From IMG/VR virus record IMGVR_UViG_3300031669_000001, positions 62,001 to 126,000 of that record: a DNA stretch of 64,000 bases; one strand, given 5' to 3'. Of the stretch, positions 27,142 through 63,211 are shown one piece after another. The notes under the pieces were generated by a model, which saw only the letters and a list, made by a program, of their open reading frames with translations, was not told the origin of the DNA and ran no database searches. Each line of letters starts with the position of its first letter. Positions within the stretch are counted from its first letter, which is position 1. The position numbers were made by a program, and so were the translations under genes.

Positions 27142-27950
27142 AAGGATTTACAATTATCAAAATGCCAACGTTTCATCATAGGAATTCCACCTTCTTTCAT
27201 ACAATAGGGACATATAATCTTCGTTTGAGATTTACCTTTTTTAGCAATTGACATTTTATTTCTAGATTCCAATGATGGATTTTTATTTGCTTTGCTTATT
27301 TTTTCGCATGTTTCTTTGGATACAATGTGTCCCTTTAAAGATTCTGACATCTTATTACGGGTTTCTATAGAAGCTTTTTTCCCCTTGTTGATAATTGAAA
27401 GTTTTTCTTTATGTTCATTGGAAAGAGGTGGCTTTTTCTTTCCTAAAGTTGACGTAGAAATTTTTTGTTTTTGTTGTTCTGACATGGGTCCTCTTTTCTT
27501 CCCCCTTTTAGATAAAGAAATTTTTGCACGAGATTCTGGAGAAATAATTTTCCCTTTATTTCCTAAAGAAATTTTTTCCTTGTGTTCTTTTGAAAGTGAT
27601 TGCTTCTTCTTTCCCAAATTAGAAATTGAGATCTTTTTACAGTGTTCTGCAGTATGTTTTATGCCTTTAACACCACCAGATAATCCATTTTCTGGTATAA
27701 AATTTAACCATCTATCAGACTTTGTGATATTTTGCTGCTCAGAGAATAGCAGAGCTACTCTAGTACATTCAGACTGATCCGTGAATGGCTTATACCAAAG
27801 AGTTTCTACATGTTGTATCCCATGTTTCTTAATATGATTTATCCAATGTTTTCCAGATCCATTATATTTTAATGGATCGTTACACGTTTTACCAAAATAA
27901 CATTTCCCTGTTATCGAATGCCGCTTAATATAAAGATAGATTAGATTCAA
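27138..27950 (-). mobile_element. Free-standing GIY-YIG-like homing endonuclease with NUMOD3 repeats
   Basis: YLYIKRHSITGKCYFGKT..YNGSG; repeated S.EHKEKIS...KGK; C-terminal CPYC..MKRWHFDNCK; AT-rich. Confidence 0.8.
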
Positions 27951-28615
27951 GATAATTTATTTATACGGTAACTTATACGATATACTTTTCCAATCAACTC
28001 TTCGTAAAGGTTGATGATGAAGGAGTCAGAACCGATTAACGTTCTTCCAGTTCCTTCAAGCCACTCGGTCAATGTAGCAATGAATGCTAATGGGCAATCT
28101 TGGCCAAACAAATCGTTCGCAGCTGGAATTTTGAGCGGCATTAAACCATGTTTGCCTTGGAACGTCTCTGACATCTTGTCAGCAAATTCAAGGAGCAAGT
28201 CATACAGCTCATTTAGAGCGATGTGTCTTGAGTACATGTTTGTAGCTAGGTGCAACTCATGAGCCTTATCTCTCGCAGCAAAGATACACGCGATGAATCG
28301 GGTGTAGCCTTCACAATCTCCAGCGCAGCCAGGGGTAGGATCAGGCGTAGGAGTTGGAGCTTCTTGTGGTGGTCCAGCGGGAACGATGTCTGTTTGAGGA
28401 GCATCGAACGTCAGCTCAGCAAACTCCTTGAATGTAATGGATTCTGTAAGACCTAAAGCCTTCTTCACAGATCCATTTACATAAGCCCAGAGATGAGGAT
28501 CATCAGCCTTGAACTTCTTCTTGGCACCGGCTTTGATTTTGCCCCAGAGAGTTTCTACCTCTGCGACAGACTTTCCTGACTTCTTCGCGTAACTTTTAAC
28601 GACTGAATTTGGCAT
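27947..28615 (-). CDS. Two-domain protein: basic N-domain plus ferritin/Dps-like helical domain
   Basis: AHELHLAT..YSRHIALNELYD..ADKMSETFQGK; internal LTESITFKEFAE propeptide-like motif. Confidence 0.6.
   Translation of the reverse strand: MPNSVVKSYAKKSGKSVAEVETLWGKIKAGAKKKFKADDPHLWAYVNGSVKKALGLTESITFKEFAELTFDAPQTDIVPAGPPQEAPTPTPDPTPGCAGDCEGYTRFIACIFAARDKAHELHLATNMYSRHIALNELYDLLLEFADKMSETFQGKHGLMPLKIPAANDLFGQDCPLAFIATLTEWLEGTGRTLIGSDSFIINLYEELIGKVYRISYRINKLS
27958..27965 (-). promoter_or_regulatory. Late promoter TATAAATA
   Basis: Perfect T4 late consensus 7 nt before the TTG start of the endonuclease. Confidence 0.6.
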
Positions 28616-28616
28616 G

Positions 28617-29054
28617 TTATTTTCCTCTTAATGCTATAACGTGATCTTTTGGTTTTGGCACGAAGTTAGGCTTCTTCATGATAGTCTTGCAGGTCAAGAT
28701 GTACTTGCCCTTCTTCTTGTCAAACTCTAACGTGAATGGAACGTTGATCTTTCTGAATGTGTCCATGATGACGCCTTCAAATTCACCACGCTTAACCTCA
28801 TCGTTGAAGTTTCCTGCCTCTGCAAAGATTGCCTTGTGATGGGCTTTCAGCTCTCTAAAGGTCTTAAACAGTTCATCAGGTGTAACATTATCTCTACGAT
28901 AACCTTTCTCATCTACAGCTTCATCGGCGATTCGATCACCGAAATGCTTTGAAAAGTTAACAATGATTCCAATCGTGGCAAAGCTCTTCCTGATCTCAAA
29001 CTCAATGTTATTGATCTGTTCTTGTGACATCTCCATCAATTCATGCAGCTTCAT
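28617..29054 (-). CDS. Putative internal head protein
   Basis: MKLHELME N-terminus; FSKHFGDR motif. Confidence 0.6.
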   Translation of the reverse strand: MKLHELMEMSQEQINNIEFEIRKSFATIGIIVNFSKHFGDRIADEAVDEKGYRRDNVTPDELFKTFRELKAHHKAIFAEAGNFNDEVKRGEFEGVIMDTFRKINVPFTLEFDKKKGKYILTCKTIMKKPNFVPKPKDHVIALRGK

Positions 29055-29497
29055 TTCTTTCCCTTTTTAGTCAGTACAAACAGAGCTCCGCTATCTCCTT
29101 CGATTTTATCTAACTTATAGCCTGTCAAATAATTCTTTATCATACGCTCATAAAGTTTCGCTCTTGCATCACCTGCATCTCTCTTTACAGCAGAAAACTT
29201 TAACATGTAAGGATCGTGCTTCTTTATCAAATTCTCTAAACACTTTTTGATGAAGGCAAAAACTTCAAATTCTCGACCCGATCCTGTCTTTTCATGAGAT
29301 TGATGCTTGTCAGCATTTTCTTCTGTAAAGTCTATTTCCCAAAAATATTCTTCTTCAAATGGCACTCTTTCCTTAGCAGCACCAAAATTGATAGTGCGAT
29401 CTCCGATTTTTGCCGATGCACCATATTCTTGTGGACTATCAGCGGTCACCTTAAAGTCAGTGAATTTTGATGTGTTCAAGAGCTCCTGAAGATTCAT
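29051..29497 (-). CDS. Putative internal head protein (paralog A)
   Basis: MNLQELLN; GSGREFEVFAFIKKC. Confidence 0.6.
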   Translation of the reverse strand: MNLQELLNTSKFTDFKVTADSPQEYGASAKIGDRTINFGAAKERVPFEEEYFWEIDFTEENADKHQSHEKTGSGREFEVFAFIKKCLENLIKKHDPYMLKFSAVKRDAGDARAKLYERMIKNYLTGYKLDKIEGDSGALFVLTKKGKK

Positions 29498-29972
29498 TTC
29501 TTCTCCAATGTAAACTCTATGGTTGAATCACCAGAAACTCTTGCATGTCTAATTCCAACTTCCTGCTTTGAAATGGTGTAGCCTTTTAAAAATCGCTTCA
29601 AGAGCCGTTCATAAACTTCCGCACGCTTGATGGTTCCCTTCACCTTATCTGCTGTAAATCTTATTGCACCAGGGTGATGCTTGGATATCAGGTGTTCCAT
29701 ACACTGTTTGATGAACGCGAAAACCTGAAATTCGTAACCTGATCCAGTGATTTCAAAGGATGTATGTCTTAGCTCATCACCAGTTTCTTCTGAAAAAGCT
29801 ACTTCCCATAGATCAACAGACTTGTCATCTTGATCAGTTTCTTTCTCATCAGCGCACCAAAAACAATCTTACGAGCCCCTATGGTGGCTTCAACGTCGTA
29901 CTCATCCGAGTTGTCAGCTTTAACCTTGACATCAGTAAATTTCTTGGTATCTAAAAGCTCTTGCAATATCAC
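29494..29972 (-). pseudogene. Frameshifted paralog B of 29051..29497
   Basis: GTG-start frame MILQELLDTKKFTD...VFGA shifts near 29853 into ADEKE..WEVAF..GSGYEFQVFAFIKQCMEHL. Confidence 0.75.
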
Positions 29973-31866: not shown

Positions 31867-31877
31867 TTAATTCTCCG

Positions 31878-32276
31878 TTATTGCAATAAATTGTCAAGCT
31901 TGTCAAAGAAGTTTTGAGTCTTTGAATGTAAGTTGTCAGGTAGATCCACAAGTTTGAATGATTTCACCTTGCTGATCTCCTTTGAAGCGGATGCTGTGCC
32001 TGCATTGTCAACCTTACATGAAAAGTAGGTTGCGTTGCCAATCTCAGCGATCTTCTTTAACTGTCCAGAAGTTACACTGACATGTGCTTCTTCCTTAAGT
32101 TCTCTGACAGCAGCTTCAACGGGTGATTCACCTTCATCTACTCCACCGCCAAAGAAGTTCCATTGATTTGGATTGCTTGATGTTGGCGCTCTCTTTCCAA
32201 GAATCAACTTATCTGACGTGAATAGGATGACCCATGCAGTCTGTTTAGGTGCTTCAAAAATATCAACTAACTTCAC
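31878..32276 (-). CDS. Nudix hydrolase with head-targeting motif
   Basis: GGGVDEGESPVEAAVRELKEE Nudix box; MKLVDIFE. Confidence 0.88.
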   Translation of the reverse strand: MKLVDIFEAPKQTAWVILFTSDKLILGKRAPTSSNPNQWNFFGGGVDEGESPVEAAVRELKEEAHVSVTSGQLKKIAEIGNATYFSCKVDNAGTASASKEISKVKSFKLVDLPDNLHSKTQNFFDKLDNLLQ

Positions 32277-32815
32277 TTAGTAGCCTCAACTTCTATGTCA
32301 ATTGGTTCTGCATCGGTTCCAAATATTTGTTTTAGTAGAGCATTTCTATCCGCAACGATGACAGTATTATTTACAGTGCTAGGCGTACCAGCTGCAATTT
32401 TTGCAGCTCTTACCTTTTGACGCTTAAACTTTGCATCGACTCTAGAATTGACTGCATTTAAAGCGATGTTCAAGAATTGCGCTGCAACTTCATTCTGTCT
32501 AGCAGCAAACTTTGGATCAACTTCTTGCGCCATTCTAGCGCTCTTCTCAAACGCGATGAGCGCGCTGGTGTGTACAGTCTCTAGCTGTCCATCGATGTGA
32601 AGATCTTCTATGCGCTCCTCTTTATCTATCTCTTCCAGAGTAGGCTCAGATTTACGAGGCACCAGTTCACCAGAAGTTGGATCGATGATGATAGACGCCC
32701 TTTCATTCACCTCAACCGCTGCCTTCTTGTGAACGTCATCAAACACTGGAGTACTTCCAGGCTCTATGTCGAACACACTTTCTAGGGGGTTTGCCTTTTT
32801 GTCATTGTCTGTCAT
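32273..32815 (-). CDS. terS: Terminase small subunit (gp16-like)
   Basis: Helical core EVAAQFLNIALNA and C-terminal VNNTVIVADRNALLKQI. Confidence 0.6.
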   Translation of the reverse strand: MTDNDKKANPLESVFDIEPGSTPVFDDVHKKAAVEVNERASIIIDPTSGELVPRKSEPTLEEIDKEERIEDLHIDGQLETVHTSALIAFEKSARMAQEVDPKFAARQNEVAAQFLNIALNAVNSRVDAKFKRQKVRAAKIAAGTPSTVNNTVIVADRNALLKQIFGTDAEPIDIEVEATK

Positions 32816-32921: not shown

Positions 32922-33365
32922 TCATCTCAAGAACATTTCTTTCTCAGTCATCACTCTGAACTTAATGCCATGACTCTTGCAAAATGCATCAGCTGCTGTC
33001 CACTTCGCCTGATTGATAACCATCTGAACTGCATCGTAGGTAGTTGGTTTCTTCCGAGTGATCCTGTTAGGATCTTGGCTTGACGGTTTAATTTCAATCA
33101 CTTCAGTGATAATGTCGCCTGTCCGATTCTTATACTTAACGATAAAGTCTGGAAAGTAGTTACACAGCTTCGGCTTACCATCAATGCTTCTCTTTATTGG
33201 GTGAAAATATGGAATTTTAAACTCTTCAGATCCCCACTTGATGACGTTTGGATTCTTGTCACAGAAGTCCATGAATCGAAGTTCCCATGAACTCAAAAAT
33301 CTAATCTTTCTAGGATCACCTAGATACTTTTCAACGTTGATTGGGGTATAAAGTCCTTTAGCCAT
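32922..33365 (-). CDS. gp4: Head completion nuclease (T4 gp4, TnsA-like)
   Basis: YTPINVEKYLGD, SSWE..FM.FCD.NP.VIKWGSE, YFPDF, IEIKP. Confidence 0.88.
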   Translation of the reverse strand: MAKGLYTPINVEKYLGDPRKIRFLSSWELRFMDFCDKNPNVIKWGSEEFKIPYFHPIKRSIDGKPKLCNYFPDFIVKYKNRTGDIITEVIEIKPSSQDPNRITRKKPTTYDAVQMVINQAKWTAADAFCKSHGIKFRVMTEKEMFLR

Positions 33366-34621
33366 TATGTAGAACTCTCAGGATTAAATGGTGATGGTGG
33401 AGTAGGTTGAGTTATAGTTTGATCTTGAACAGCAGCCTTGCCTCCATTGACAGCGTTGCTACCAGATGTGATAGATGCTAACGTTGTAGAAACGTTAAGT
33501 GACACAACATCAATCGCGCTGCTGGCTGCAGTTCCTATAGTCTTGTCAACTCCACTGATAATTTTTGCAGGACCTGCAAGCAATGGACTAAGGACGTTAC
33601 TTAACGCAGCCGGAACATGATTGAGGATATCGCTGCCTTTTCTAAGCGCGTCGTAGATGCCAGAAGTTTTGACTGTTGGAGGAGCATCTCCATACATTGG
33701 AGCTCCATCTATATGTCCCGCGTTAGGAATGCCAGAGGTTCCACCAGCTCTAAACAAATCTGTAACACCCCAAGAATAAAGAGTATTGTCGTTAACTGTT
33801 TTAAGATCTATCGCATCGTACGAGAACGTTATAGTTGCCATAGATCCAGTGTTGCTGTCTTCGTGACTCAGCTCATCAAATTCAAAAGTTTCAATGCGTG
33901 GATTTAAGAAAGTAAAACGATTGGCTCTTGGTCCGCCATTTTTTGTAAGATCAACGTAGATCTGTTCTAGAATTATCTTCTGACCTCGAGTGTTAGAATA
34001 TCCATTTGCGTAAGGAATTGTCGATGACGCCAATCCCCAGCCTCTATCGATACCGTAATTGCCTGCACCTACTCCAGAAGTCTGAGCCATGTAAGCTCTA
34101 AAGAAGTCATTGACGCTGTTGCCAATTTCATCCAAGAATGTAATTTGAAGAGGTTCGAGGATGGTATTTGTTAGAACTCTTGTTCTAAAGTTGTAATAAT
34201 TTACATCAACGTGATTGAATTTGATCTTTGGCTTATCACAACGATGAACGTAAAAATAAAAATCATCGCCACCTGGAAATCCAACAAATTGAACCTTAAA
34301 GAGGAACTTGAACTTTGGGTGATGCAAGTTCATGTCATCAGCATAGTGAATAGCTTCAAATTCACCAGCAACACCGAATTTTGCTGTGTTTATAGGAGCT
34401 AAAAGCCTATTAAGCTCTGTAGCACCAGGAAGAGGAATCTTACTAAGACCTGGAATTCTACTTTCTATCCCAGGAATTCCTCCAAGAGTTTGAGGTATCT
34501 GATTGCCTAATGAGAAGATTTCCGATGGTGATAAATTCTGAGCTTGAAACGCGTCTATCTCAGCCTGGATGCTTGGAGGGCTTCCTACTGTAAGGCCTAA
34601 AGCATTTACTGGATCTGTCAT
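33365..34621 (-). CDS. Tail-tube-fold protein (tube initiator, gp48/gp54-like)
   Basis: PKFKFLFKV, KPKIKF..VNYYN, PLQITFLDE, DELS.ED..ITFSYD. Confidence 0.65.
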   Translation of the reverse strand: MTDPVNALGLTVGSPPSIQAEIDAFQAQNLSPSEIFSLGNQIPQTLGGIPGIESRIPGLSKIPLPGATELNRLLAPINTAKFGVAGEFEAIHYADDMNLHHPKFKFLFKVQFVGFPGGDDFYFYVHRCDKPKIKFNHVDVNYYNFRTRVLTNTILEPLQITFLDEIGNSVNDFFRAYMAQTSGVGAGNYGIDRGWGLASSTIPYANGYSNTRGQKIILEQIYVDLTKNGGPRANRFTFLNPRIETFEFDELSHEDSNTGSMATITFSYDAIDLKTVNDNTLYSWGVTDLFRAGGTSGIPNAGHIDGAPMYGDAPPTVKTSGIYDALRKGSDILNHVPAALSNVLSPLLAGPAKIISGVDKTIGTAASSAIDVVSLNVSTTLASITSGSNAVNGGKAAVQDQTITQPTPPSPFNPESST

Positions 34622-35118
34622 TTATCTTTCTTCTTAGAAGGTTTTTCTTGCTCTACATCTTCATCTTCATCTTTGCCTTGCTTGAGAATCTTCAGGAGGT
34701 CTATCACCAACTTTTGAGCAGATCTTCCAAGCTTAGTCCCGAGAGAAATTTCACGAAGGTAGGATACGTCTGACTTTACGATGTAACCTAGCTTTTTCTT
34801 AGTATCTATTTCATGCTTCAAAAAAAGCTTTTTGATCTGTTTGTCTATAGCACCACCTTTTTCTATCTTCAAAGGTGTAAGAGAATCTATCTCAAATTCA
34901 CCAGAGTCAGTGCTGTTGTCAAATGTTAAGTTGATAGGTTTACCATTTGCACCTTTGATGGTGCTCTTCTCATGGGCTACGCCCAGATAATCTTTATCCT
35001 TGTCTCTCTTAGGATCCTTGACGATTCCAGCCTTTTGACGAAATAGCAGCATCGCGATAGCATCTATCGGCAGCAGCTTTTCCTTCTTTTTCTCTTCAAA
35101 TAGATCACAGATTTTCAT
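34618..35118 (-). CDS. Putative internal head protein
   Basis: MKICDLFE start with GGAG SD; late promoter upstream. Confidence 0.6.
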   Translation of the reverse strand: MKICDLFEEKKKEKLLPIDAIAMLLFRQKAGIVKDPKRDKDKDYLGVAHEKSTIKGANGKPINLTFDNSTDSGEFEIDSLTPLKIEKGGAIDKQIKKLFLKHEIDTKKKLGYIVKSDVSYLREISLGTKLGRSAQKLVIDLLKILKQGKDEDEDVEQEKPSKKKDK

Positions 35119-36926: not shown

Positions 36927-37523
36927 TTAACCGTTAAACATACCGCCGATAGCAGAACCCGTAACAGCAGAGTTAAGATTCTGACGAGCATGGTCGAAAC
37001 GAACGGTAAGATCGATAGTAACCTTTTCACCGGTTGCGTAATCCATTTCACCCCAGTTAACTGTCTGGAGAGAGCAACCTTCATAGATCCAGGATTCAGT
37101 GACAGCTTCATTACCATCTAGCATCTCAAGCTGCATAGCAAACTTGTAAGAGAATGCAGTTGGAGCTGCGTTAAGCCATGGGCCAGTTGCACCAATTAAG
37201 CGCTGTTGAAGCTCAAGCTGTTGTTGAATAGCGTGAGTTGCGCGGTTGGTGATGTCATCTTCGATAGTCAGAGTTGCAGGTTCAAACGTGTGTTTGCCCA
37301 GAACGTAGATGCGAGAGTTGTAACGATCAAGTTGAATTTCTTCCCATGAAAGACTAGGACGAGTAGCAGTAATTACTTGAAGTGAAAGATCATTCGGTAC
37401 GCTTGCGTTAGAAGCGGATACACCGCCTAGACCAGTAAACAGCGCTCTCCAACGGTTTTTAGCCTTTGGTTGAAGAATACCGTTACCAACACCTGCAATT
37501 CCGACTTGTGAGAGAGTAGCCAT
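36927..37523 (-). CDS. gp19: Tail tube protein
   Basis: QPKAKNRWR, RPSLSWEEI, GKHTFEP..TIEDD, W..EGC, LDY..GE.VTI.LT.RFD; late promoter and strong SD. Confidence 0.8.
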   Translation of the reverse strand: MATLSQVGIAGVGNGILQPKAKNRWRALFTGLGGVSASNASVPNDLSLQVITATRPSLSWEEIQLDRYNSRIYVLGKHTFEPATLTIEDDITNRATHAIQQQLELQQRLIGATGPWLNAAPTAFSYKFAMQLEMLDGNEAVTESWIYEGCSLQTVNWGEMDYATGEKVTIDLTVRFDHARQNLNSAVTGSAIGGMFNG

Positions 37524-38577: not shown

Positions 38578-39621
38578 TTAGTCAGGATTCGGTAGAGATT
38601 CTGAATTTTCCTGCTCTTCATTCCAAGGCGCAGCGCCGTCATCCCAATTTACACCACCCGTTGGTACGTTAGCATTTATTGTTGCAGTACCGTCACCAGT
38701 TCCTGCATTTGTAGCGATGAATGTAGTACCTATCGTATTTGATATCGATCCACACTGAGTAAAATCTGTTGGAATAGGCGTACCAATAGTTTCAATCTCA
38801 TACGTCTGACCGACTACAAATGAGCCGGCAGTTATAGAAGCTGTAGTGCTGTCCCAAACACCAGGACCTTCATCGCCTGTTACAGTGAATGCTGTTACTG
38901 GACCTGCAGATCCGAATGGGACCAACTCGCCATTTTCATCTATCTCATCTAGAGTAAGTTTATCCAAGTCACCAATTCTAACTGTGATGCTTTGAATCAA
39001 ATCATTTCTAACTTCAATTGGTGGTGACAACCATACTGGAAGTTCAAATTGAAGAGTCCAGATTATCATTCGACGATCCACGCCCATCGGATAATTCTCT
39101 TCATTTTGCATACTGCGCAGAAACAGCTTTGCAATCTTCGTCCAGTCAAATGGCGCGTCGTTGAACTGTAGTTGAAGATCATAATCAAATAGGATCAAAA
39201 TTTGTTCTAAGATCTGGAACATTTGATCTGTGTTTGAAGCATATACTGCGAGTTCCATCTGCATGTTGTAAGGTATCGCCATAACTCGTCTTAGAGTTTT
39301 AACATCATCTGGAAACACACCGCCTTGTTCTAACATCGTCCTTCGATCAACTTGATTTACACCGTGAAGCCTATCAGGAGCAAGTTCAAGTCCTGTCATG
39401 TATGCAGACATCATTGGAATGGTGTGAAGCTTGTTTTGAGTGTTACCAGCCGCGATGGCCGCAGTTACTCGATCACTTGAACCGTACCTCACGGGGACCG
39501 TCATGGTGATCAATTTTCCAGCACCATCAAGACCACCGGTAACCTGCATTCCTGTAAAAACGTTTGCGAAACCAAGAATGAACTTCTTGAGTTGCTGATT
39601 GTAGTAATAATTTCTGATCAT
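38578..39621 (-). CDS. gp15: Tail terminator / sheath stabiliser (gp15-like) with C-terminal extra module
   Basis: YYYNQQLKKFILGFANVF, VPVRYG, PYNMQMEL, QILEQIL..F. Confidence 0.8.
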   Translation of the reverse strand: MIRNYYYNQQLKKFILGFANVFTGMQVTGGLDGAGKLITMTVPVRYGSSDRVTAAIAAGNTQNKLHTIPMMSAYMTGLELAPDRLHGVNQVDRRTMLEQGGVFPDDVKTLRRVMAIPYNMQMELAVYASNTDQMFQILEQILILFDYDLQLQFNDAPFDWTKIAKLFLRSMQNEENYPMGVDRRMIIWTLQFELPVWLSPPIEVRNDLIQSITVRIGDLDKLTLDEIDENGELVPFGSAGPVTAFTVTGDEGPGVWDSTTASITAGSFVVGQTYEIETIGTPIPTDFTQCGSISNTIGTTFIATNAGTGDGTATINANVPTGGVNWDDGAAPWNEEQENSESLPNPD

Positions 39622-42490: not shown

Positions 42491-42837
42491 TAGGTACTTA
42501 CCTTACAGTTGTCAAAATGCCATCTTTTCATAGACCCGCCGGCTCCTGTTTTACTACAATGTGGGCAAATTAAAATTGGACGCCCAAACGACCGAATTTA
42601 CAATATCAAGTTCTTCCGAAAAGAACTCTGCAAATTCCATACAATCATCTCTCTATTTACAAACAATTTATGCCAAACTGTTTCTACATGTTTTTTACCA
42701 TGCTTTCTGATATGACGAGTCCAGACTAATCCAGACCCTTTATATTCAACAGGATCCGATTTTGTCGTTTTTCCAAAATACATCAAACCTGTAATAGAAT
42801 GTCGTTTGATGTAGAGATATGTAGGCTTGAATTCCAT
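42490..42837 (-). pseudogene. Decayed GIY-YIG-like homing endonuclease
   Basis: N-term YLYIKRHSITG as in 27138..27950; frameshift in the AGAGAG tract near 42650; NUMOD3 region missing; CPHC..MKRWHFDNCK remnant in a third frame. Confidence 0.85.
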
Positions 42838-46627: not shown

Positions 46628-46811
46628 AATCGTCCGGGCAAAGAATTTTTATCATCGGGTTCACACCATCATACATCGTAAATTGACAGTTTCTACCCAT
46701 TTTAGCCTTCAAGATCAAGGCGTGGCCTAGAGCTTCTAACCCTGAGGCCTCGCCAAGAATCTCTACAGATCCATCTGCATGTTTATGAATGTACGGAGTC
46801 TTAACTGACAT
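46611..46811 (-). CDS. Hypothetical protein
   Basis: Coupled ORF. Confidence 0.5.
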   Translation of the reverse strand: MSVKTPYIHKHADGSVEILGEASGLEALGHALILKAKMGRNCQFTMYDGVNPMIKILCPDDFDETP

Positions 46812-51574: not shown

Positions 51575-53770
51575 TTAGCCTAAAGTAGAGCCAGTAGCAA
51601 CGATGTTGATTGGGATGTAGATAAATTCTACAGACTTAGTAGGTTGAACTGCGATGTCTACCCAAAGTTGATTTGCATCAACTCTCGTTGGAGTATTGTT
51701 GCTTGAATCACAGATTACGACGTAGTCATACAGACCGCGACGAAGCAGGATGTCATTTAAGTAGTTATCGATCATTGACTTGATAGAATCTTGAGTGATA
51801 CGATCATTCAATTCGAACAGGTAAGACATTGAAGCCTTACGGATATCACGCTTGATCATAACCATCAGACGCATAACGTTTACACGGTCAAGTCCAGATG
51901 CAACAGAACCCACAGAAGTTTTCTGTCCAAATACAACGATACCTTGTCCTGGGATGAATGGAATAGGGTTAACATCTGCACCGTATTCATACAGAATATC
52001 ACGCTGACCTTGGTTAAGAGGAGTAGATACGAACGTTGTTGCTGTACCCAAAGTTCCCTTGACGTAACCAATGTCAGTAATTCCAGTAACTACACCACGA
52101 CGTAAACCTGCTGGTGGATACCAAACTTCAGACACGCTATCGCTGTAAGCGTAAGTCTTAAGCGCCACACCAGAAGCTGCACAGAACACTGACGCTCCAT
52201 CAAGATTGGTTGTGAGAGCGTTAGGGTAGTAATATGCTACGTTAGTGCTTGATTGACGTTCAATACCAATAGACCAAACTGCTGTATCTTCTGGAGTTCT
52301 ATCGAATGGGCAATCAGCGATTACAAAAGCTTCATCATTGATAGCATCATTCAAGCTCAACAGAGAGCTGATTGTTTCGTGATATCCAGGGCAAAGAATC
52401 AAGTTGTATTCGTAGATTTCTGAACGAACATCTTGGTTAGAGTTGATTTCGGCGTTGAGAGCTGCTACGATAGAAACACGTCTTGCAGCATCATTTGAAC
52501 CTAAAGGTTCAGCAAGTGAAACCTGAGTAACGTTAAATGTCCATGCATCGGCAGCTCTGAACGCGATCGTTCCACCTGTGATGGTGAATGAGACTCTAGA
52601 GTTCGCGTAAAGAACTCCTTGTGTTGCGTTTCCTTGACTACCTGAAACCGTTCCGCTAACTGCAAAAGTTGGAACTGTTACAGATCCAACCGCAACGGTA
52701 AATCCAGTTCCACCCGCAAAAGTTCCAGTTAATTGATTGCCAACAACGTAACCTGTGCCACCACCAACAAGAACAACATTCGTAACTCCACTTGTTCCTG
52801 CTGTGCTTACGTTTGTATTTGTCGCTGTGAGAGCTGTATTGATTGCACCGATAAGATCAGTTCCAGTAGAAGCAGGGATAGTTGCAACTACAGTAGAAGT
52901 TGCTCCTGTAGTTGCACTGGTAATAACAAGTGCATTGCCAACTACGCTAACAGTTCCTGTCACACCGAGTTGTGCAGTCATCAATGCCGCAAGAGATGAT
53001 AGTGTATCGACACCAGTTGCAGTAACTACGTGATCTATAGCTCCAGCTCCATTGATATTTGTAGTGAATGTAAATGGTGCGGCAGCGATTCCCAATACGG
53101 TAGATCCAGTAACAGCAGGGGTTGCGGTGAAAGCGATTGTTGCCTTACCACTTGTGATACCAGCGACGGTGATATTAGCAGTTGCACCAGTACCTGTTCC
53201 TGATACAGGAGTCAGGGAAATTCCATTGTATGTTCCGTTTGTGTAACCTTGACCAGGAACAACCGTGCTAAGAGAAACGATTCCATTTGAACCTGAATTT
53301 GCAGTAACGGTCCAAAGTTCTGCAACTGAAGTTGCCTGATTTAATACGGGAGCTGAGATAGTACCATTGCCAGTTCCACCGAATGTTGGACCGGCTGATA
53401 CATATTCAGAGGTTGTCAAGTCTGCAAGATCGACGTCAGCGCGAACAGTGTAAGCACGATTCAAGATCGTTAGAGCTTGATTTAAAGCTAGAAGACCATA
53501 TTCATTACGAGCATCACCGTGCAAAGCTGCACCAGTGTTGTCTGTTCTAAAGACGGGAACGCCGAATGTAGAAACAGATTGATTCAGTGAAGTGATCGTA
53601 CGTACAACGCTATGTTCCAGTGTACCTGTAGCTGAGGTAATCCCATCAGCCTGTACTTTATTGGCTTGCGTTGCAAGAAAGATGAGCGGCACTGTAGGAG
53701 CTGCAGCAGGTATGTAGTAACTTTCATTGACGATAGTTACTGAAACTCCAGGACTTACTAATGTTGCCAT
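51575..53770 (-). CDS. gp18: Tail sheath protein
   Basis: MATLVSPGVSV, NEYGLLA, W.PPAG.RRG, VNPI, GQKT..LDRVNV.RL, DYVVICDSSNN. Confidence 0.93.
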   Translation of the reverse strand: MATLVSPGVSVTIVNESYYIPAAAPTVPLIFLATQANKVQADGITSATGTLEHSVVRTITSLNQSVSTFGVPVFRTDNTGAALHGDARNEYGLLALNQALTILNRAYTVRADVDLADLTTSEYVSAGPTFGGTGNGTISAPVLNQATSVAELWTVTANSGSNGIVSLSTVVPGQGYTNGTYNGISLTPVSGTGTGATANITVAGITSGKATIAFTATPAVTGSTVLGIAAAPFTFTTNINGAGAIDHVVTATGVDTLSSLAALMTAQLGVTGTVSVVGNALVITSATTGATSTVVATIPASTGTDLIGAINTALTATNTNVSTAGTSGVTNVVLVGGGTGYVVGNQLTGTFAGGTGFTVAVGSVTVPTFAVSGTVSGSQGNATQGVLYANSRVSFTITGGTIAFRAADAWTFNVTQVSLAEPLGSNDAARRVSIVAALNAEINSNQDVRSEIYEYNLILCPGYHETISSLLSLNDAINDEAFVIADCPFDRTPEDTAVWSIGIERQSSTNVAYYYPNALTTNLDGASVFCAASGVALKTYAYSDSVSEVWYPPAGLRRGVVTGITDIGYVKGTLGTATTFVSTPLNQGQRDILYEYGADVNPIPFIPGQGIVVFGQKTSVGSVASGLDRVNVMRLMVMIKRDIRKASMSYLFELNDRITQDSIKSMIDNYLNDILLRRGLYDYVVICDSSNNTPTRVDANQLWVDIAVQPTKSVEFIYIPINIVATGSTLG

Positions 53771-55867: not shown

Positions 55868-56608
55868 ATGAAACTCCATGAAATTTTAGATCAAGTAGAA
55901 CAAGAACAATTAGATGAAGGTCTAAAAGATTTAATCACAAAGCTCAAAACTAATTGGAAGAAAACCATGATTGCAGGTCTACTTGCAACAGCAACCGCAA
56001 TGGGGCCTTCAGCTGTTAAAGCTTGTGATTTTATTGGATGGAATGATACATTCAAAAATATCCAACATACACAATTAAATAAGCTTACACCAGAAGCAAA
56101 AAAAGCTATCGATCAAAGTGATTATATAAAAGCTGCCAAGACAATCACAAATAAACCTGACGAAATAAATTTAGTTGCAGCATGCCTGGCATTATCAAAT
56201 GATGAAGCTTCTATATCTGTTAAATTCTTAACTCAATTAGCTAAAAAAGATATACCAGAAGCACAATTTCAATTGAGTCTTGCATATTCAAATGGTAAGG
56301 GAGTTGCAGAAAATGATAATGAAGCATTAAAATGGAATGAAAAAGCTGCGTATCATAAAAAATCTCCAGGTGCTACAAGTGCACAAGGATATATGGCTCT
56401 TAATTATATGTATGGGCTAGATAGCAAAATAGATAATGTTAAAGCTTATGCATGGGCTATTATTTCAGTTGAAAATTATATGGAAAATGATACATTTAAA
56501 AGAAAAGATCTTATAAGAACGAGAGAGACTCTTGCAAATTTTTTATCTGATGATCAACAAAAACAAGCTGAAAATTTAGTTAAAAATATTACTAAATCAC
56601 TACATTAA
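55868..56608 (+). CDS. Sel1-repeat protein with propeptide and signal-like segment
   Basis: AQFQLSLAYSNGKGV..DNEALKW..AA; AQGYMALNYMYG..DNVKAYAW; N-term MKLHEILD..EQLDE. Confidence 0.8.
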   Translation: MKLHEILDQVEQEQLDEGLKDLITKLKTNWKKTMIAGLLATATAMGPSAVKACDFIGWNDTFKNIQHTQLNKLTPEAKKAIDQSDYIKAAKTITNKPDEINLVAACLALSNDEASISVKFLTQLAKKDIPEAQFQLSLAYSNGKGVAENDNEALKWNEKAAYHKKSPGATSAQGYMALNYMYGLDSKIDNVKAYAWAIISVENYMENDTFKRKDLIRTRETLANFLSDDQQKQAENLVKNITKSLH

Positions 56609-57336: not shown

Positions 57337-58689
57337 TTACAGGAAGGTTAGGTTGTTAACAACGACCTTTCCATAATAATCGGCCGAGTTCGCAAGCGAT
57401 GAAGCGTTGCTTACGAAGGTGACTTTACCGTAACGTGTCATAACCATCAGCTGGTTGTTGTAGGTCGTTGGATCCACAACAGTGTTGCTGGTCATCAGAG
57501 GAACGTATGGGCAGTAGAAGTAGCCGGTATCTGTTTCACCGCCACCACCTTTGTAACCGACGAGAACGATGTCGGATGTCGAGGTAGCGCCGCCTGGTAC
57601 TGGAGCACCTGCAGCAACGGTTCCGAAGGAAGCGTTAAACAGGAAGCTGTACACTTTGATAGTTCCGTTAAGAACACCAACGAGACGGGTGTTGTTTGGG
57701 CCTTCGAAAGAACCGCTAACAGCTGGTGCGAACACCGACTTAGCAGCAGATTGAAGAACAGAAACAACCTGTGGGGATACAACGATAAAGTTACCAGCAC
57801 CACGACGGGTTTTAGCAGCGATTTCGTTAGCAACCTTGTTGATCAGCACACCGAGAACAGCGTGACGATCACCAACGTAGTGAGGAACACCTGTGAAGGC
57901 ACCAGACATATCGAAGGTTTCGGTTGTACCAGCCAAGCGAATCAGATCGGTAACGATTTCGTTGTCGATTTCGTGAACGATTTCAGCGCTAAGGGCTTGA
58001 GTGATTTCAGCTTCGAGGTCGAGACCATGCTGGGACGAAAGGTCCTGCATTGCTTCGATTGTCCACTTAGCTTGCAGCTTACGGGTCTTAGCAACCACAG
58101 GCTGACGGAGAACTTGCAGACCGAGTGAACGACCTGGGAAGCTTTCCATATCGACTACGTCACCAGCTTCTCCGGAGAGTGGGCTAGAAGAAGTCGAGAA
58201 TGCACCTGCTGGAGTATATGCACCACCAGTAGCAACACCGGTAGTTGGATCATACAGACCACCAGAAGAAGCTGGGTTAACGCCACCAGAGTAGAAACGG
58301 CGCATTTTTGAAGCGTAAGGTTGTGTCCACGATGTGTTACCAAATACTTCATCGTTTACTGCGATGTCTGCAGATCCACCTTCGCTAGTTGTTGCAGCAT
58401 TCTTGTAAGTGAAACGCAGCGAGAACACCAGTCCTGTAGGACCAGTCATAGGCTGCACACCTACGATTTCAGTTGCAATCGTTCCTGGGATGATACGACG
58501 TACCATAGGAAGAATAATTTTTTGGAAACTACCAATGGATCCGGTAGAGTTTGCATCAGCTCCGGCTGTTTCGGTTAGGTACTTGGCTTGGTTATCCAGG
58601 ACCGTCGAGACGATCGAAGCCTTGCGAGGATCTAGACCTTCAAGCAATGCTGCCTTGGTGTCTGCCCAATTTTCGAAGAGTTCCTTCAT
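57337..58689 (-). CDS. gp23: Major capsid protein
   Basis: VGVQPMTGPTGLVF.LR, AKTRKLQAKWTIEAMQDL..HGLD.EAE, RRGAGNF, YCPYVPL, MTRYG; start reset to MKELFE. Confidence 0.95.
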   Translation of the reverse strand: MKELFENWADTKAALLEGLDPRKASIVSTVLDNQAKYLTETAGADANSTGSIGSFQKIILPMVRRIIPGTIATEIVGVQPMTGPTGLVFSLRFTYKNAATTSEGGSADIAVNDEVFGNTSWTQPYASKMRRFYSGGVNPASSGGLYDPTTGVATGGAYTPAGAFSTSSSPLSGEAGDVVDMESFPGRSLGLQVLRQPVVAKTRKLQAKWTIEAMQDLSSQHGLDLEAEITQALSAEIVHEIDNEIVTDLIRLAGTTETFDMSGAFTGVPHYVGDRHAVLGVLINKVANEIAAKTRRGAGNFIVVSPQVVSVLQSAAKSVFAPAVSGSFEGPNNTRLVGVLNGTIKVYSFLFNASFGTVAAGAPVPGGATSTSDIVLVGYKGGGGETDTGYFYCPYVPLMTSNTVVDPTTYNNQLMVMTRYGKVTFVSNASSLANSADYYGKVVVNNLTFL

Positions 58690-58717: not shown

Positions 58718-59635
58718 TTACTTAACACCAGCCAGTTTCCGAATTCTGGAGAGCTGTGCGTCGTTTAGTTTAGTGCTGTTGTCAACTACGTCTTCTGTTA
58801 CTATTTCTTCGTTTCCGGTTACGAGTTTTGCAGCAGGCTTCACTACAACGCTCTTGTCTTCAACGATTTTTGTTACATCATCTTTCTTTGGATCGCTGAT
58901 TGCTTCTTTCAGAACGCGGCCAATATAAACTTTGTACGCTTCTTCTAGTTTGTCAGTTGATACATTTGAAAGGATGATCTTCATTTGCTCACGAGCGTTA
59001 CCGCTTAGTGGAGCGAGTAATTCTTCTAACTTGCCGTTACGTGCTTCAGCAAGACGTGAATGTTCAATGTCAGCAAGACGTGTTTCAGCATCGTTCAACT
59101 TATCAAGCGCTTCCGCCAGATCAGTTTCAACAGATGAAAGATCTTCCTTGCGGAAACTCTTAAATTCTGCTTCGACTGCTTCAAAAATCTTACGTCCAAA
59201 TTCGAGCTTCTTAACGTCTTCGATGTCTTCTTTAAGTTCAGACATTTCTTCGTCAATACGCACTTCGAGGAACGCGTCTAACTTGTCAACTAGCTGATTC
59301 AACTGCTCACCAAGAAGCTGTGCAAGCCTTTCTTTTTCTTCAACGAGTTTTTCTGCATATTCAACTTCCAAATCGCGGAACTTGTTAATGTCTTCTTTTA
59401 GCTCATCAAATTCTGTTGTGAGGAATTCTTCAATCTTTGTGTCGACCGTTTCGGCAAGCTCTTCTCTTGCCTTGACGAATTCTTCTGTCAGGGTAGAGCG
59501 GATCTCGACTTCAAGCTTGGAACGTTCCTCGGTCAGATATGCATCAACAGCAGTCTTAAACTGCTCATTGAGTTCTGCCTTAGTTTCTTCGCTCAGTAGG
59601 TCGGATTCGAGCAGTTTCTTAAGGATGGAATCCAT
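58718..59635 (-). CDS. gp22: Prohead core scaffold protein
   Basis: Acidic coiled coil, FGRKIFEA, directly upstream of gp23. Confidence 0.8.
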   Translation of the reverse strand: MDSILKKLLESDLLSEETKAELNEQFKTAVDAYLTEERSKLEVEIRSTLTEEFVKAREELAETVDTKIEEFLTTEFDELKEDINKFRDLEVEYAEKLVEEKERLAQLLGEQLNQLVDKLDAFLEVRIDEEMSELKEDIEDVKKLEFGRKIFEAVEAEFKSFRKEDLSSVETDLAEALDKLNDAETRLADIEHSRLAEARNGKLEELLAPLSGNAREQMKIILSNVSTDKLEEAYKVYIGRVLKEAISDPKKDDVTKIVEDKSVVVKPAAKLVTGNEEIVTEDVVDNSTKLNDAQLSRIRKLAGVK

Positions 59636-59726: not shown

Positions 59727-60272
59727 TTATTCAGACAATTTCATTTCTTCTAGAAATTTTTTACGTTTTAGGTCGTGATTTGCGCAAGTTCTTGCAAATC
59801 CATCATACTTTCCCTTATATTCTCCAAGACCTTTATTCCAAATAACTCTGCCATTAGCATATGATTCTAATTGACTTTTTGTACAGTTAGCACGCTGTTC
59901 ATCTGTCATTTTTCTTCCACGATTCTTGGCAGCAATCTTTGCAATATGTTCTTTGGTCTTTGGAACCCCTGGCGCTCCACCTAAACCACCTAGTGCATTA
60001 TTCATACACAAGGGATCATCAATCAGAGCTTGATCTACAAATCGAGTTTCAAGAGCGGTGATATAATCTCTCGTAGGTCCAAAGCATAAAATTTCTCGTA
60101 TAAAATTTTCTCTTCCATAAGGTTTGACTGCATTTCTTAAATGATCACCTGAACCAAAATAATTTTTGGTGTGCGTAGAATTCATGTCATTTGTAGAATG
60201 AATTCCAACATAGTACTTACCATTAAGTTTGCAAGTTGAACGATAGAGGAAGTGAATTGATTTCTGTATCAT
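59727..60272 (-). mobile_element. Seg-like GIY-YIG homing endonuclease
   Basis: FLYRST..NGKYYVGIH, YFGSG, YGRENF.REIL, NNALGG, NUMOD3-like EHIAKIA..RGRK. Confidence 0.8.
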
Positions 60273-60342: not shown

Positions 60343-60374
60343 CTTGTTTTTTGATGTACTAATGTACTAACTCT

Positions 60375-61211
60375 CTATTCAATATCTTTCAATTGATCGA
60401 TCAATTCTGGTGCCTTGTCTTTAAAGTCAGGATCAACTATTCCGCGTTTCTTTTCTGGATTCCACGCTGCAAAATACTTACTTCTAATGTGATAAACTCG
60501 AATTCCTGCAACTATATCAACGCTAAAATTACCAGCTTTACGAACAAGTTCAAGTTTTGACACTGCATCTTCAAGCTTATCAAGTCTCTTGTAGACAGTT
60601 TGATCAGCTAAATCTTCAGTAATCTCAATAGATTCTGAAACTGGAACCCCAACTGCGTGCTTCTTCAAAAATGTCAAAGCTCTTCCAGTAGAGTGTTTCG
60701 CCATTCCAGTTACAGAGTTAAACAGCGATGCGACATTATTGTTCTTATCCTTTGGAGTGAATGAATAAGTCTTGTTACCAATCTTGGTCAGAATTACATC
60801 TTTATCAAGCTTAAAAGCTCCAAGTGAAAGACCTGCAGTGTCTTCTAACAGATCAAAAAGTTCATTCAATAATTCCATAGTGCTTACCTCTCCAATTTCT
60901 TCACCCAAAATTTCACCTCTATTTTTTGAGATGACGTATATTCCATACGAGCGATCTTTGCCCGGGATTTCAGCAGAGATGTTCTTTCCATTGTCCTTTG
61001 AAACAAATCTAAGCTTGTCCGCTTCTTTAGGATAATGTTTCTTTACTTGAGCTTTCCAAAAATCAACGCTACCAGTCACAGGTCGTTTCACTTCTTCTGG
61101 CTTACCATCTTTTCTAGATCCGTCTTTATTAAATCTGGATCTAGGATGACCTTCAGGCCAGGTGTCCTTGTCCTTGTCATAAATCTTGACTCTAACTTCA
61201 TCAATTTTCAC
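60375..61211 (-). CDS. Putative internal head polyprotein
   Basis: MKIDE; internal MELLNELFDLLE and VSESIEITE junctions. Confidence 0.6.
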   Translation of the reverse strand: MKIDEVRVKIYDKDKDTWPEGHPRSRFNKDGSRKDGKPEEVKRPVTGSVDFWKAQVKKHYPKEADKLRFVSKDNGKNISAEIPGKDRSYGIYVISKNRGEILGEEIGEVSTMELLNELFDLLEDTAGLSLGAFKLDKDVILTKIGNKTYSFTPKDKNNNVASLFNSVTGMAKHSTGRALTFLKKHAVGVPVSESIEITEDLADQTVYKRLDKLEDAVSKLELVRKAGNFSVDIVAGIRVYHIRSKYFAAWNPEKKRGIVDPDFKDKAPELIDQLKDIE

Positions 61212-61735: not shown

Positions 61736-61736
61736 G

Positions 61737-61943
61737 TCAGTCTTTCTTTGAAATTTGATCTTTAACTGGTTTCAAGAAGTTCTTAAGCTTCCTGCGATTT
61801 GGTATCTTTACCTTCTGGGTGTCAGGATCTACCATCATATTCTGAATTCCACTGTGTTGTGCACCCTTTGTAGGTGACGGCCATGCACGAAGGCTGATAA
61901 CTGTCAGTGGAATCTTAAATTCAAGTAGATCGTTAAGCTTCAT
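61737..61943 (-). CDS. Small basic putative internal head protein
   Basis: MKLNDLLE. Confidence 0.55.
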   Translation of the reverse strand: MKLNDLLEFKIPLTVISLRAWPSPTKGAQHSGIQNMMVDPDTQKVKIPNRRKLKNFLKPVKDQISKKD

Positions 61944-62269
61944 TATTCCTCGTCAGGATGATAATCTTTTTCGTTACTGAAGAATGCTAGACGATCACCT
62001 GAATTAAGTGAAGCAAATAGACCTCCAACTTTTACAGGTTCTTTCCAACCATCTTTGATGCCTAAAGCTTGAGCAAGCTTGGTTACATTCTTAGATGCAT
62101 CGATCGTGTAGATTTCACCTAGCTGTCCCATCGCTTTTGGCGAGTAATAAATTTCAACGCTTTGTGAAATTGACTCTTTCACAACTTTAACTTTGACGCC
62201 TTTATGCTTCATCAAGTCATTAGCCAGAAGCTGTTCAGAAACTTTGTCTTTGCATTCGATAATGATCAT
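61943..62269 (-). CDS. Putative head/core protein
   Basis: Start reset to MIIIECK; internal VVKES. Confidence 0.5.
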   Translation of the reverse strand: MIIIECKDKVSEQLLANDLMKHKGVKVKVVKESISQSVEIYYSPKAMGQLGEIYTIDASKNVTKLAQALGIKDGWKEPVKVGGLFASLNSGDRLAFFSNEKDYHPDEE

Positions 62270-62279
62270 GTTCGTTCTC

Positions 62280-62678
62280 TCAGATAGTTGACAATGCTTT
62301 GATCGCGTTATCAAGGTGTTTGTTTACATTTATAATTTGACCAGAGGCGCGAAGATTTGGCTTGCGAATCGCAGCTCTTTCATGATCTTTCAATCTCGAT
62401 TCTAAAGTTTTTAATTTCTCCTTTAGCTCGCTTGTTTGATCTTCATAATGTGCGAGAGCTGCAGCCTCTCCAGTTCCGATAGCTTCTTCTATCTCGACCT
62501 CGTTCAGCGCGTTCAGTTCTTTTAGTAGATCCATAGACTCTTTAACCTCTCTCCATGATCCAGGATTAGAAACTGCGCTCTTTGGTCCTGTTCGTTTGTA
62601 TTTTTTACTGTTCAACTCAACTTCATCTGCACCATTTGCTTTTTTATCAAGCTGAGCGCTAAGATTCTTGTCTATCAT
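62280..62678 (-). CDS. Putative internal head protein
   Basis: Internal VKESMDLLKELNALNE. Confidence 0.55.
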   Translation of the reverse strand: MIDKNLSAQLDKKANGADEVELNSKKYKRTGPKSAVSNPGSWREVKESMDLLKELNALNEVEIEEAIGTGEAAALAHYEDQTSELKEKLKTLESRLKDHERAAIRKPNLRASGQIINVNKHLDNAIKALSTI

Positions 62679-63211
62679 TTTGATTCCTTTTCTTCGAACT
62701 TCTTGATAGCTTTTTCAGCTTTTTCCTGACGATTAGATATAAGTTGATGTAAACGTTTCAACGCGTTTGTCATCGTCTTAACGACAGTCTTAACTGGATC
62801 ACCTACTACCATTGTAGGTTTTGGAACTGCACGATCACCGCGAGGTCTATCAGCAAACTGACTTGGACCTTGAGAGTAATCTATCTTACCATGCGGAAGA
62901 ACTTTATACTGCATGTTATTGTTGTAGATCTTTTTGCTGTAAGAATAAGCTTCTTTGATCTTACCTTTGAAGTTTAAAGTTCCAGTCTTCTTCTCACGAT
63001 CTGTCGATTCATCCTTCATCCCTAAGGCCAAGATTGCTTTATACTCAGGTGATCTCTTAATTTCAGTGTAAGCTTTCGCGACGTCTTCAGACGTTACACC
63101 CATACCTTTAAGCCAATCAGATATAGTACCTCTAATCCGACCATGCTCACTGTTAGGATTATCCTTCCTAAATGATGGATCGTATGCTTCCAGAAGATCT
63201 TCAACTTTCAT
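62675..63211 (-). CDS. Putative internal head protein
   Basis: Start reset to MKVEDLLE just after the gp21 stop. Confidence 0.6.
   Translation of the reverse strand: MKVEDLLEAYDPSFRKDNPNSEHGRIRGTISDWLKGMGVTSEDVAKAYTEIKRSPEYKAILALGMKDESTDREKKTGTLNFKGKIKEAYSYSKKIYNNNMQYKVLPHGKIDYSQGPSQFADRPRGDRAVPKPTMVVGDPVKTVVKTMTNALKRLHQLISNRQEKAEKAIKKFEEKESK

Follow-up and report, generated by a model that had tools for sequence, protein, structure and literature searches.

Leaders resembling the T4 capsid-targeting sequence on numerous unrelated proteins in the head, neck and tail module of a T4-like jumbo phage

The stretch of DNA considered here, referred to as the window, comprises 64,000 nucleotides (bases 62,001-126,000) of IMG/VR virus record IMGVR_UViG_3300031669_000001, a single contig of 345,069 bp and 42.8% G+C, in which gene calling gives 552 genes. 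From 27.9 to 63.9 kb the window is occupied by a T4-like head, neck and tail module. Scattered through this module are about 20 non-homologous open reading frames (ORFs) whose products begin with a similar leader, an amphipathic N-terminus of 8-12 residues that resembles the capsid-targeting sequence (CTS) of the internal proteins (IPs) of phage T4. The major capsid protein has its nearest GenBank relatives in Ralstonia phage RsoM2USA (57% identity) and Xanthomonas phage XacN1 (54%), followed by the RaK2/121Q group at ~39% and, judged from sequence, the phage is a T4-like jumbo phage of the T4/RaK2/XacN1 lineage. A search for close DNA matches to positions 28-48 kb of the window in the GenBank phage collection returned none.

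A preliminary description of the window had listed 21 such N-termini and presented them as one portable tag. All 21 were recovered by independent gene calls; most start at the first start codon past an in-frame stop, four start with GTG, and MKIDE (60375-61211) is the sole weak case. The leader is indeed portable, but it comes in at least three flavours rather than one: a short form, M-K-L-x-[DE]-L-[LF]-E, a long form, M-x-x-L-K-E-L-L-x-L-x-E, and a form like that of the T4 IPs, M-x-T-F-K-Q-F-L-S-E. All three place hydrophobic residues at positions i, i+3 and i+4, and their usual ending is [LI]-x-Glu. An [LI]xE site lies within residues 5-14 in 19 of the 21 listed N-termini; in 13 of these 19 the last such site ends at residues 8-14, which is the leader end, while the remaining six have their sole site within the leader, ending at residue 5 or 6, and have N, D, Q, G or T as the last leader residue.

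A leave-one-out position-specific scoring matrix (PSSM), which reads K-L-x-E-L-[FL]-E after Met1, places 19 of the 552 N-termini of the genome at or above a cut-off of 10 bits, compared with 0.17% of internal Met residues and 0.09% of shuffled N-termini, an enrichment of 20-40-fold. A second model was trained solely on ORFs picked by their position between the protease and scaffold genes of metagenomic relatives; it converged on L-[QK]-E-L-L-x-L-x-E and scores 13/552 N-termini of this phage at 8 bits or more, where 1-2.5 are expected. A grammar (G1) taken from the T4 IPIII mutagenesis literature, in which hydrophobic residues at i, i+3 and i+4 are followed by Glu one or two residues on, is matched by 28/552 N-termini against 7-9 expected. 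Under a strict grammar, matches are found in 14 of the 62 genes between 26.9 and 63.3 kb of the window and in 19 of the 490 genes elsewhere (odds ratio 7.2, p = 2e-6). Thus, the motif is concentrated in this span, yet it is not confined there as had been supposed: the rest of the genome contributes about 15 good leaders, including those at genome 898, 51393, 140515, 147613, 173294, 174999, 213734, 234683, 274782 and 309880. The 'dozens' of carriers originally proposed amount to about 20 in the window and about 30 genome-wide. Likewise, the reported absence of the leader from early, replication and glycosyltransferase genes holds roughly for the first 27 kb of the window, which contain weak look-alikes only (9082-9480, 26299-26898 and 26914-27141), but it has to be set against the good leaders outside the window. 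The carriers and their neighbours are listed in Table 1.

Table 1. Leader-bearing ORFs, followed by other genes of the module, in window coordinates (aa, amino acids; nt, nucleotides; pI, isoelectric point; E, expect value)
Feature	Coordinates	Strand	N-terminus	Remarks
ORF, 145 aa	28617-29054	-	MKLHELME	pI 9.1; PSSM 16.8 bits
ORF, 148 aa	29051-29497	-	MNLQELLN	17.2 bits with the relative-trained model
Split duplicate of 29051-29497	29494-29972	-	M(I)LQELLD	Front part, with leader, 29799-29972; back part 29494-29700
Protein-kinase-like ORF, 249 aa	29969-30718	-	MKLFELV	phrog_15752, E 3.5e-13
ORF, 383 aa	30715-31866	-	MKLAILLE	pI 9.4
NUDIX hydrolase, 132 aa	31878-32276	-	MKLVDIFE	GTG start
ORF, 166 aa	34618-35118	-	MKICDLFE	TATAAATA 29 nt upstream
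FtsK-gamma winged-helix DNA-binding domain ORF, 75 aa	35202-35429	-	MKLFEIL	PF09397, E 3e-9
ORF, 92 aa	35426-35704	-	MSLIKELLKLKE	Long leader
ORF, 167 aa	35701-36204	-	MELLKELLNL	GTG start
ORF, 93 aa	36214-36495	-	MKLDELFE	GTG start
ORF, 120 aa	36492-36854	-	MSILKELDLLSE	Long leader
C3-like (R-S-E) ADP-ribosyltransferase, 180 aa	39618-40160	-	MHLFKELLE	
SLT lytic transglycosylase, 226 aa	40147-40827	-	MMKVNEIILE	
ORF, 401 aa	44927-46132	+	MKLLEELLTINE, then AS	ATAAATA promoter-like site upstream
ORF, 268 aa	50703-51509	-	MITFKQFLSE	T4-IP-type leader; C-terminal phosphoribosyltransferase domain
Sel1-repeat ORF, 246 aa	55868-56608	+	MKLHEILD	
Weak candidate, 278 aa	60375-61211	-	MKIDEVRV	GTG start
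ORF, 175 aa	61208-61735	-	MSKILKDMLE	Acidic, pI 4.8; close mimic of scaffold N-terminus
ORF, 68 aa	61737-61943	-	MKLNDLLE, then FKIPLTV	Kept in relatives
ORF, 178 aa	62675-63211	-	MKVEDLLE	Directly after protease gene
Small terminase-like protein	32273-32815			
Head-closure gp4-like protein	32922-33365			
Tail-tube protein, 418 aa	33365-34621			Tube domain limited to residues 98-276
Second tail-tube-family gene	36927-37523			
gp3-like sheath stabiliser	38578-39621			
Neck adaptor	42853-44814			
Sheath	51575-53770			
Major capsid protein, gp23-like	57337-58689	-		Y-L-T-E at residues 37-40
Scaffold, gp22-like	58718-59635	-	MDSILKKLLESDLLSE	
Prohead protease, Peptidase_S77 (T4 gp21 family)	63213-63854	-	MILIEE	

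A repeated DNA cassette or promoter element was considered and is ruled out, as the DNA upstream of the carriers is not conserved and the codons at the conserved Leu and Glu positions vary from one carrier to the next. The carriers are not paralogues either; they had been described as unrelated domains, and BLAST comparison with the first 14 residues removed links almost none of them. The split gene at 29494-29972 is probably a decaying paralogue of its neighbour at 29051-29497. Together, the varied codons, the unconserved upstream DNA and the lack of paralogy point to selection at the protein level.

Comparison with relatives indicates that the leader is a module separable from the protein body behind it. 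Metagenomic orthologues of the ADP-ribosyltransferase carry MHLFKELLE, MKLNEILE, MVTFRQFLE or MKLCEL in front of one conserved body. For the NUDIX hydrolase, 98 homologues (50-89% identical) were collected, 94 of them with a recognisable body, and all 94 carry a leader: 53 of the short form, 17 of the T4-IP type (for example MKTFKQFLQE and MKSFKEFIVE) and 24 others, most of which have an LxE-type ending. The linker between leader and body varies in length, the first hydrophobic-x-Glu site being separated from the body by a median of 10 residues, and the most distant homologue (34% identity) begins at the body, without a leader. Outside the window, the 5'-nucleotidase of this phage has a 9-residue leader, MKLTEILNP, which its RsoM2USA and XacN1 homologues lack, and members of phrog_12810, namely the tandem RsoM2USA genes 403-405 and gene 174999 of this phage, carry MTFKAFLQE, MTTFKEYLTE, MKLEDLFE and MKLRSLIEE. 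Relatives of the 401-aa protein start with MLLKELHQINE followed by AS, where MKLLEELLTINE precedes AS here; IMG/VR relatives numbered three loci for this protein, one for the transglycosylase and none for the kinase-like protein, and are informative for the 401-aa protein only. The exchange of flavours on orthologous bodies suggests that the flavours are functionally equivalent versions of one signal. Leader-bearing NUDIX orthologues (P0031, P0084, P0024, P0039 and P0052) are also found on metagenomic contigs of 345-356, 572 and 718 kb; the presence of tagged orthologues on the 572-kb and 718-kb contigs implies that the leader system may reach much larger genomes.

These observations bear on the possibility that the pattern is a by-product of translation initiation, arising from Lys at codon 2 and A/T-rich early codons, or else of chance or gene-calling bias. 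MK- starts are common in phage genes, a loose grammar returns a handful of chance matches in any such genome, and in T4 itself a few unrelated proteins, DNA ligase (MILKILNE) among them, also score highly. Nevertheless, an effect of this kind would not be expected to leave Leu and Glu codons free to vary, to include several carriers that start with GTG or TTG, or to replace a Leu-rich flavour with a Phe-rich one on orthologous bodies. Nor does it account for the retention of the leader by every NUDIX orthologue with a recognisable body despite sequence divergence, for the enrichment over internal Met residues and shuffles, or for the lack of a leader on the sheath, tube and other abundant structural proteins, and it leaves the match to the T4 leader and the location and charge of the carriers unaccounted for. 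It is thus highly improbable as an explanation.

The machinery that would be needed to process a T4-type leader is encoded by this phage. The prohead protease (PF03420, E 5e-27) is 37% identical to T4 gp21 and shares with it the GELNHP and G(V)S(T/S)RG motifs, while its N-terminus, MILIEE, mirrors LIE-9 of T4 gp21. T4 gp21 cuts after L/I-X-Glu (PMC9026906). In the capsid protein of this phage, YLTE40 aligns with the maturation site of T4 gp23, FLTE65 followed by A, and the scaffold contains 19 [LI]xE sites where 3.5 are expected. On the strength of these alignments and site counts, gp21-type cleavage specificity appears to be conserved on the capsid protein, the scaffold and the protease itself.

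In T4, the first 10 residues of IPIII (MKTYQEFIAE) suffice for targeting to the head, with residues 4 and 7 serving targeting and residues 8 and 10 serving processing (PMC9026906). Processing shortens T4 gp24 by 10 residues and takes short N-terminal peptides off Alt and the internal proteins (PMC9958956). The leaders described here are alike in being N-terminal, about 10 residues long and hydrophobic at the targeting positions 4 and 7, in their L/I-X-E ending, in the presence of an S77 protease gene, and in being borne by otherwise unrelated, mostly basic proteins, as is the case for the CTS of IPI, IPII, IPIII, Alt and gp24. One of them, MITFKQFLSE on the 268-aa ORF, has F4, F7, L8 and E10, exactly the IPIII pattern; together with MKTFKQFLSE of RsoM2USA it is nearly identical to T4 MKTYQEFIAE and MKTFKEF. 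When the PSSM built for this phage is run on 154 T4 N-termini, gp24 (MAKINELLRE) and Alt (MELITELFDE) rank second and third, and grammar G1, which was run on other genomes, fits the N-termini of T4 IPII, IPIII, gp24 and Alt by reading. A resemblance of the leaders to the gp22-like and gp23-like N-termini (MDSILKKLLESDLLSE and MKELFEN..ALLEG) had been pointed out at the start and is real. It has a counterpart in T4, where MLKEQLIAEA of gp22 resembles MKTYQEFIAEA of IPIII, just as the scaffold N-terminus MDSILKKLLES resembles the leaders MSKILKDMLET, MSLIKELLKLKES and MSILKTLLEAS here.

As had been proposed, the carriers include enzymes, assigned by sequence or fold as an ADP-ribosyltransferase, a NUDIX hydrolase, an SLT transglycosylase and others. 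Carriers outside the window include a 5'-nucleotidase (NT5C), a cytidylyltransferase-like protein and a Zn-protease-domain protein, whereas the remaining carriers match no recognisable family. The ADP-ribosyltransferase belongs to the R-S-E fold (PF03496, E 4e-12). Its AlphaFold model, with a predicted local distance difference test score of 74, matches C3 exoenzyme and Vis with a Foldseek probability of 1.0 and a template modelling score of ~0.6; in this model the leader forms a short low-confidence helix (residues 4-9) detached from the fold, and the sole [LI]xE site of the protein lies in the leader. Comparison with T4 Alt by BLASTP gave E = 0.89, the alignment being limited to the LYR and STS motif region. 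The protein is small, C3-like and without significant sequence similarity to Alt, so that by sequence it is not an Alt family member, although it may have an Alt-like action and, as in T4, an ADP-ribosyltransferase is present among the cargo.

A second property common to most carriers is their charge. A pI of at least 8.5 is found for 72% of 36 tagged proteins but for only 28% of the other 516 (odds ratio 6.7, p = 1.4e-7), and for 30% of the untagged genes of the same span. The leader itself is acidic and the basic charge must therefore belong to the mature part of the carriers. CTS-bearing proteins of other T-even phages have likewise been described as basic (PMC9026906). An apparent depletion of internal [LI]xE sites in the carriers (~33 against ~41 expected, summed by hand) is unconvincing. 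For the 383-aa and 401-aa proteins, all ESM Atlas matches are below threshold; the nearest named cluster is 'IpIV internal head protein', with scores of 0.44 and 0.63, a lead and not evidence.

The genes between the protease and the scaffold require separate consideration. Among 27 IMG/VR loci with a scaffold 33-86% identical to that of this phage (25/27 at 60% or more), the protease and scaffold genes are conserved and the genes between them are variable. In 17 of the relatives' loci this gap contains 45 non-identical ORFs in 27 sequence families; 17 of the 45 are strictly tagged, 13 of the 27 families include a tagged member, with looser leaders on several more. An untagged family of small ORFs (MIIIECKDKVSEQ / MITIKCKNKVAEQ), represented here at 61943-62269 and in three relatives (L035, L036 and L041), also occurs in the gap, sometimes in two copies. 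In T4, gp67 and gp68 are encoded next to gene 21 and are degraded to peptides (PMC9958956). It could therefore be argued that the leader does target the prohead core, but that many of its carriers serve as structural components of the core or as accessories of the scaffold, being degraded and expelled at maturation rather than delivered. This would apply mainly to the small unassigned ORFs adjoining the protease and scaffold genes, tagged examples of which occur in the gap both here and in relatives, and the acidic 175-aa ORF, with its scaffold-like N-terminus, would be a possible case. For the carriers as a whole, however, it is unlikely: most of them have about the expected number of [LI]xE sites, unlike the scaffold, the ADP-ribosyltransferase has its single site in the leader, intact enzyme or DNA-binding domains are present in many carriers, and most carriers are basic, like the CTS-bearing internal proteins of T-even phages. 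Nevertheless, some small carriers adjoining the protease may be degradable core proteins, analogous to gp67 and gp68, and not injected effectors.

The two nearest characterised relatives share the core head genes with this phage, but almost none of its carriers has a homologue in either. In RsoM2USA the excess of leaders is similar, with 27/483 N-termini matching the grammar against 4-7 expected, among them about a dozen leaders of the MKTFKQFLSE type. Gel bands from RsoM2USA virions, analysed by liquid chromatography with tandem mass spectrometry, were assigned to ORFs 38, 86, 89, 132, 257, 356, 359, 361, 383 and 438 (PMC8504454). Of these, ORF89 starts with MKTFKQFLSE and ORF132 with MKTFKQFLNTLME, and their computed masses agree with those published (PMC8504454). 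ORF257 and ORF438 were not used, as their annotated masses (19.7 and 62.4 kDa) differ from the published ones (17.57 and 51.69 kDa). A text search of the RsoM2USA and XacN1 genome papers for 'N-terminal' gave no matches.

In a further explanation, the leader serves as a propeptide that is removed or has a regulatory role, or as an N-terminal interaction helix, and silences an enzyme or docks it to another phage complex with no capsid loading involved. The ADP-ribosyltransferase, the kinase-like protein and the transglycosylase are plausibly harmful to the cell that produces them, and a helix lying apart from the ADP-ribosyltransferase fold would suit such a role. This explanation is decidedly less probable than that of a degradable core, since it leaves unexplained the near-identity to a T4 IP leader for which targeting has been demonstrated experimentally (PMC9026906), as well as the likeness to the scaffold N-terminus, the concentration in the head module, the basic pI of the carriers and the presence of leader-bearing proteins in RsoM2USA virion bands.

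The best-supported reading, and one that is considered probable, is that a T4-type capsid-targeting leader, cleaved by a gp21-type protease, is present on many unrelated proteins of this phage. The loading of proteins by such a tag, as first proposed, fits the computational tests run, once corrected for the span of the leader, its flavours, the label 'late', the core proteins and XacN1. The system would thus be that of T4 on a larger scale. During prohead assembly, the leader would bring its carrier into the scaffolding core, and its likeness to the scaffold N-terminus suggests that entry might be achieved by mimicking the N-terminal helix of the scaffold. The S77 protease would then cut after the leader Glu, freeing a mostly basic mature protein within the head, and at infection this protein would leave the head along with the DNA. 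By analogy with T4, it may be inferred that packaging, cleavage and injection take place in this phage, and that the carriers enter the host together with the DNA in the manner of T4 IPI and Alt (PMC9958956). Given the leader on about 20 unrelated proteins, enzymes included, the head of this phage probably receives an unusually large cargo of protein. In the window this cargo would comprise ADP-ribosyltransferase, kinase-like, NUDIX hydrolase, SLT transglycosylase, phosphoribosyltransferase (PRTase)-domain, winged-helix DNA-binding and Sel1-repeat proteins, and elsewhere in the genome a 5'-nucleotidase, a nucleotidyltransferase-like protein and a Zn-protease-domain protein. The cargo would presumably act ahead of phage gene expression, in host takeover or counter-defence.

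Several observations weigh against this reading. Some 7-9 matches to the loose grammar are expected genome-wide by chance, and 6-7 of the listed leaders end in N, D, Q or G instead of E; for such leaders it is relevant that Asp at position 10 of IPIII blocks cleavage while targeting is kept (PMC9026906). RsoM2USA encodes about 20 paralogues of ~200 aa that start with MKLxEI, with function and location unassigned, and its virion-band proteins ORF38 and ORF86 have no leader. In XacN1, enrichment under the grammar is weak (12 against ~5 expected), and the virion chitinase and lipase lack a leader (two of three named enzymes, the M23 peptidase ORF322 being left out). Structure prediction of the 68-aa carrier in complex with the activated protease (residues 12-213) scored 0.00, which is evidence neither way.

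The capsid-targeting reading nevertheless implies clear departures from T4. About five T4 proteins (IPI, IPII, IPIII, Alt and gp24) bear the leader, in contrast to ~20 in the module and ~30 genome-wide here. Two further flavours are present, the 8-residue MKLxELFE and the 12-residue MxxLKELLxLxE, and NUDIX hydrolase, kinase-like, PRTase, 5'-nucleotidase, SLT, winged-helix and Sel1 proteins are added to the cargo. The T4 system is known from experiment, whereas the present one is predicted from sequence. The internal proteins of T-even phages are highly diverse, with a conserved CTS as their only common part (PMC3012670), and the CTS has been proposed in reviews to be an evolutionary device for loading varied proteins (PMC9026906). 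Fast gene turnover at a fixed locus, with the leader kept, is common to both systems (PMC3012670, PMC9026906). However, the T-even internal-protein genes lie near gene e or the tRNA region, while the locus described here is inside the head gene cluster; carriers are also found in far greater numbers here, with some scattered among the neck and tail genes. A likeness also exists with phiKZ, 201phi2-1 and SPN3US, giant phages in which many head proteins are cut after Glu by a gp21-related protease, and some processed head proteins of phiKZ-like phages are ejected into the host (PMC9026906, PMC7411985). In the latter phages cleavage takes place at S/A-X-E (PMC9026906), as opposed to [LI]-x-E after a short portable leader; the text consulted (PMC9026906) reports no short N-terminal address tag of this kind for them.

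If the capsid-targeting reading is correct, it represents a known mechanism, that of T4, at a new scale and with leader variants that appear new in the literature searched. Also apparently new there are the number of carriers (~20 in a single module, ~30 per genome), the two additional flavours, the enzymatic cargo, and a leader-bearing NUDIX hydrolase conserved in >90 relatives, some of them on 345-718 kb contigs. Should the leaders work as in T4, the injected proteome of this phage and of its many metagenomic relatives would be far larger and more enzymatic than that of the T4-type phages described in the papers searched. As the leader is short and recognisable from sequence, candidate injected proteins of uncultured jumbo phages could be listed cheaply and, since injected proteins act first in infection, these would be good candidates for host takeover and anti-defence functions. 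Natural CTS variants of 8, 10 and 12 residues would provide material for studies of core-cargo recognition, and could be of use in protein packaging, which currently relies on the single T4 leader. It has also been considered, as a speculation more doubtful than the reading on which it builds, that a clade of uncultured 345-720-kb T4-like phages pre-loads ~30 or more proteins per virion by means of the three leaders, as a kit against defences based on nucleotide signals or NAD depletion. Such a kit would contain the NUDIX hydrolase, which keeps its leader in >90 relatives, the 5'-nucleotidase, the PRTase-domain protein and an NMNAT-like nucleotidyltransferase. On this speculation, the leader would serve as a sequence-only marker for injected counter-defence proteins in metagenomes.

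The timing of carrier expression may be approached through promoter-like sites. TATAAATA occurs 25 times in the genome, which is about the number expected by chance, and 19 of the 25 copies lie 8-120 nt upstream of a start on the same strand; the hexamer TAAATA is depleted genome-wide (143 against ~330 expected). By sequence, this placement fits a T4-type late promoter. TATAAATA or ATAAATA is present directly upstream of the carriers at 34618-35118, 44927-46132 and 55868-56608 and of those at genome 898, 140515, 213734 and 274782. The designation of the carriers as putative late genes is thus backed by TATAAATA-type promoters for some, but for others it rests on position among structural genes.

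The module also contains genes of other kinds. The first gene of the span originally noted, at 27947-28615, lacks a leader and matches, in its C-terminal half, the T4 rI.-1 'starvation-inducible regulator' family (phrog_858). At 175-213 kb of RsoM2USA (MG752970; loci L011-L013), the MKLxEI paralogues lie on both strands and have no Pfam or PHROG matches. In the window, a gene resembling a GIY-YIG homing endonuclease lies amid the structural genes at 27138-27950, with NUMOD3 above threshold and a weak GIY-YIG match, and a SegE-like GIY-YIG homing-endonuclease-like gene (59727-60272) adjoins the scaffold gene, much as segD adjoins gene 23 in T4. A 79-aa ORF at 42598-42837 has no Pfam matches and resembles a truncated copy of the gene at 27138-27950; its N-terminus (..PTYLYIKRHS), found also at genome 148936, 153196 and 343077, is common with that of the longer gene (..IYLYIKRHS). 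Finally, an RNA-ligase-domain gene (46801-47898) lies inside the structural module, and in T4 rnlB is likewise located directly downstream of gene 24.

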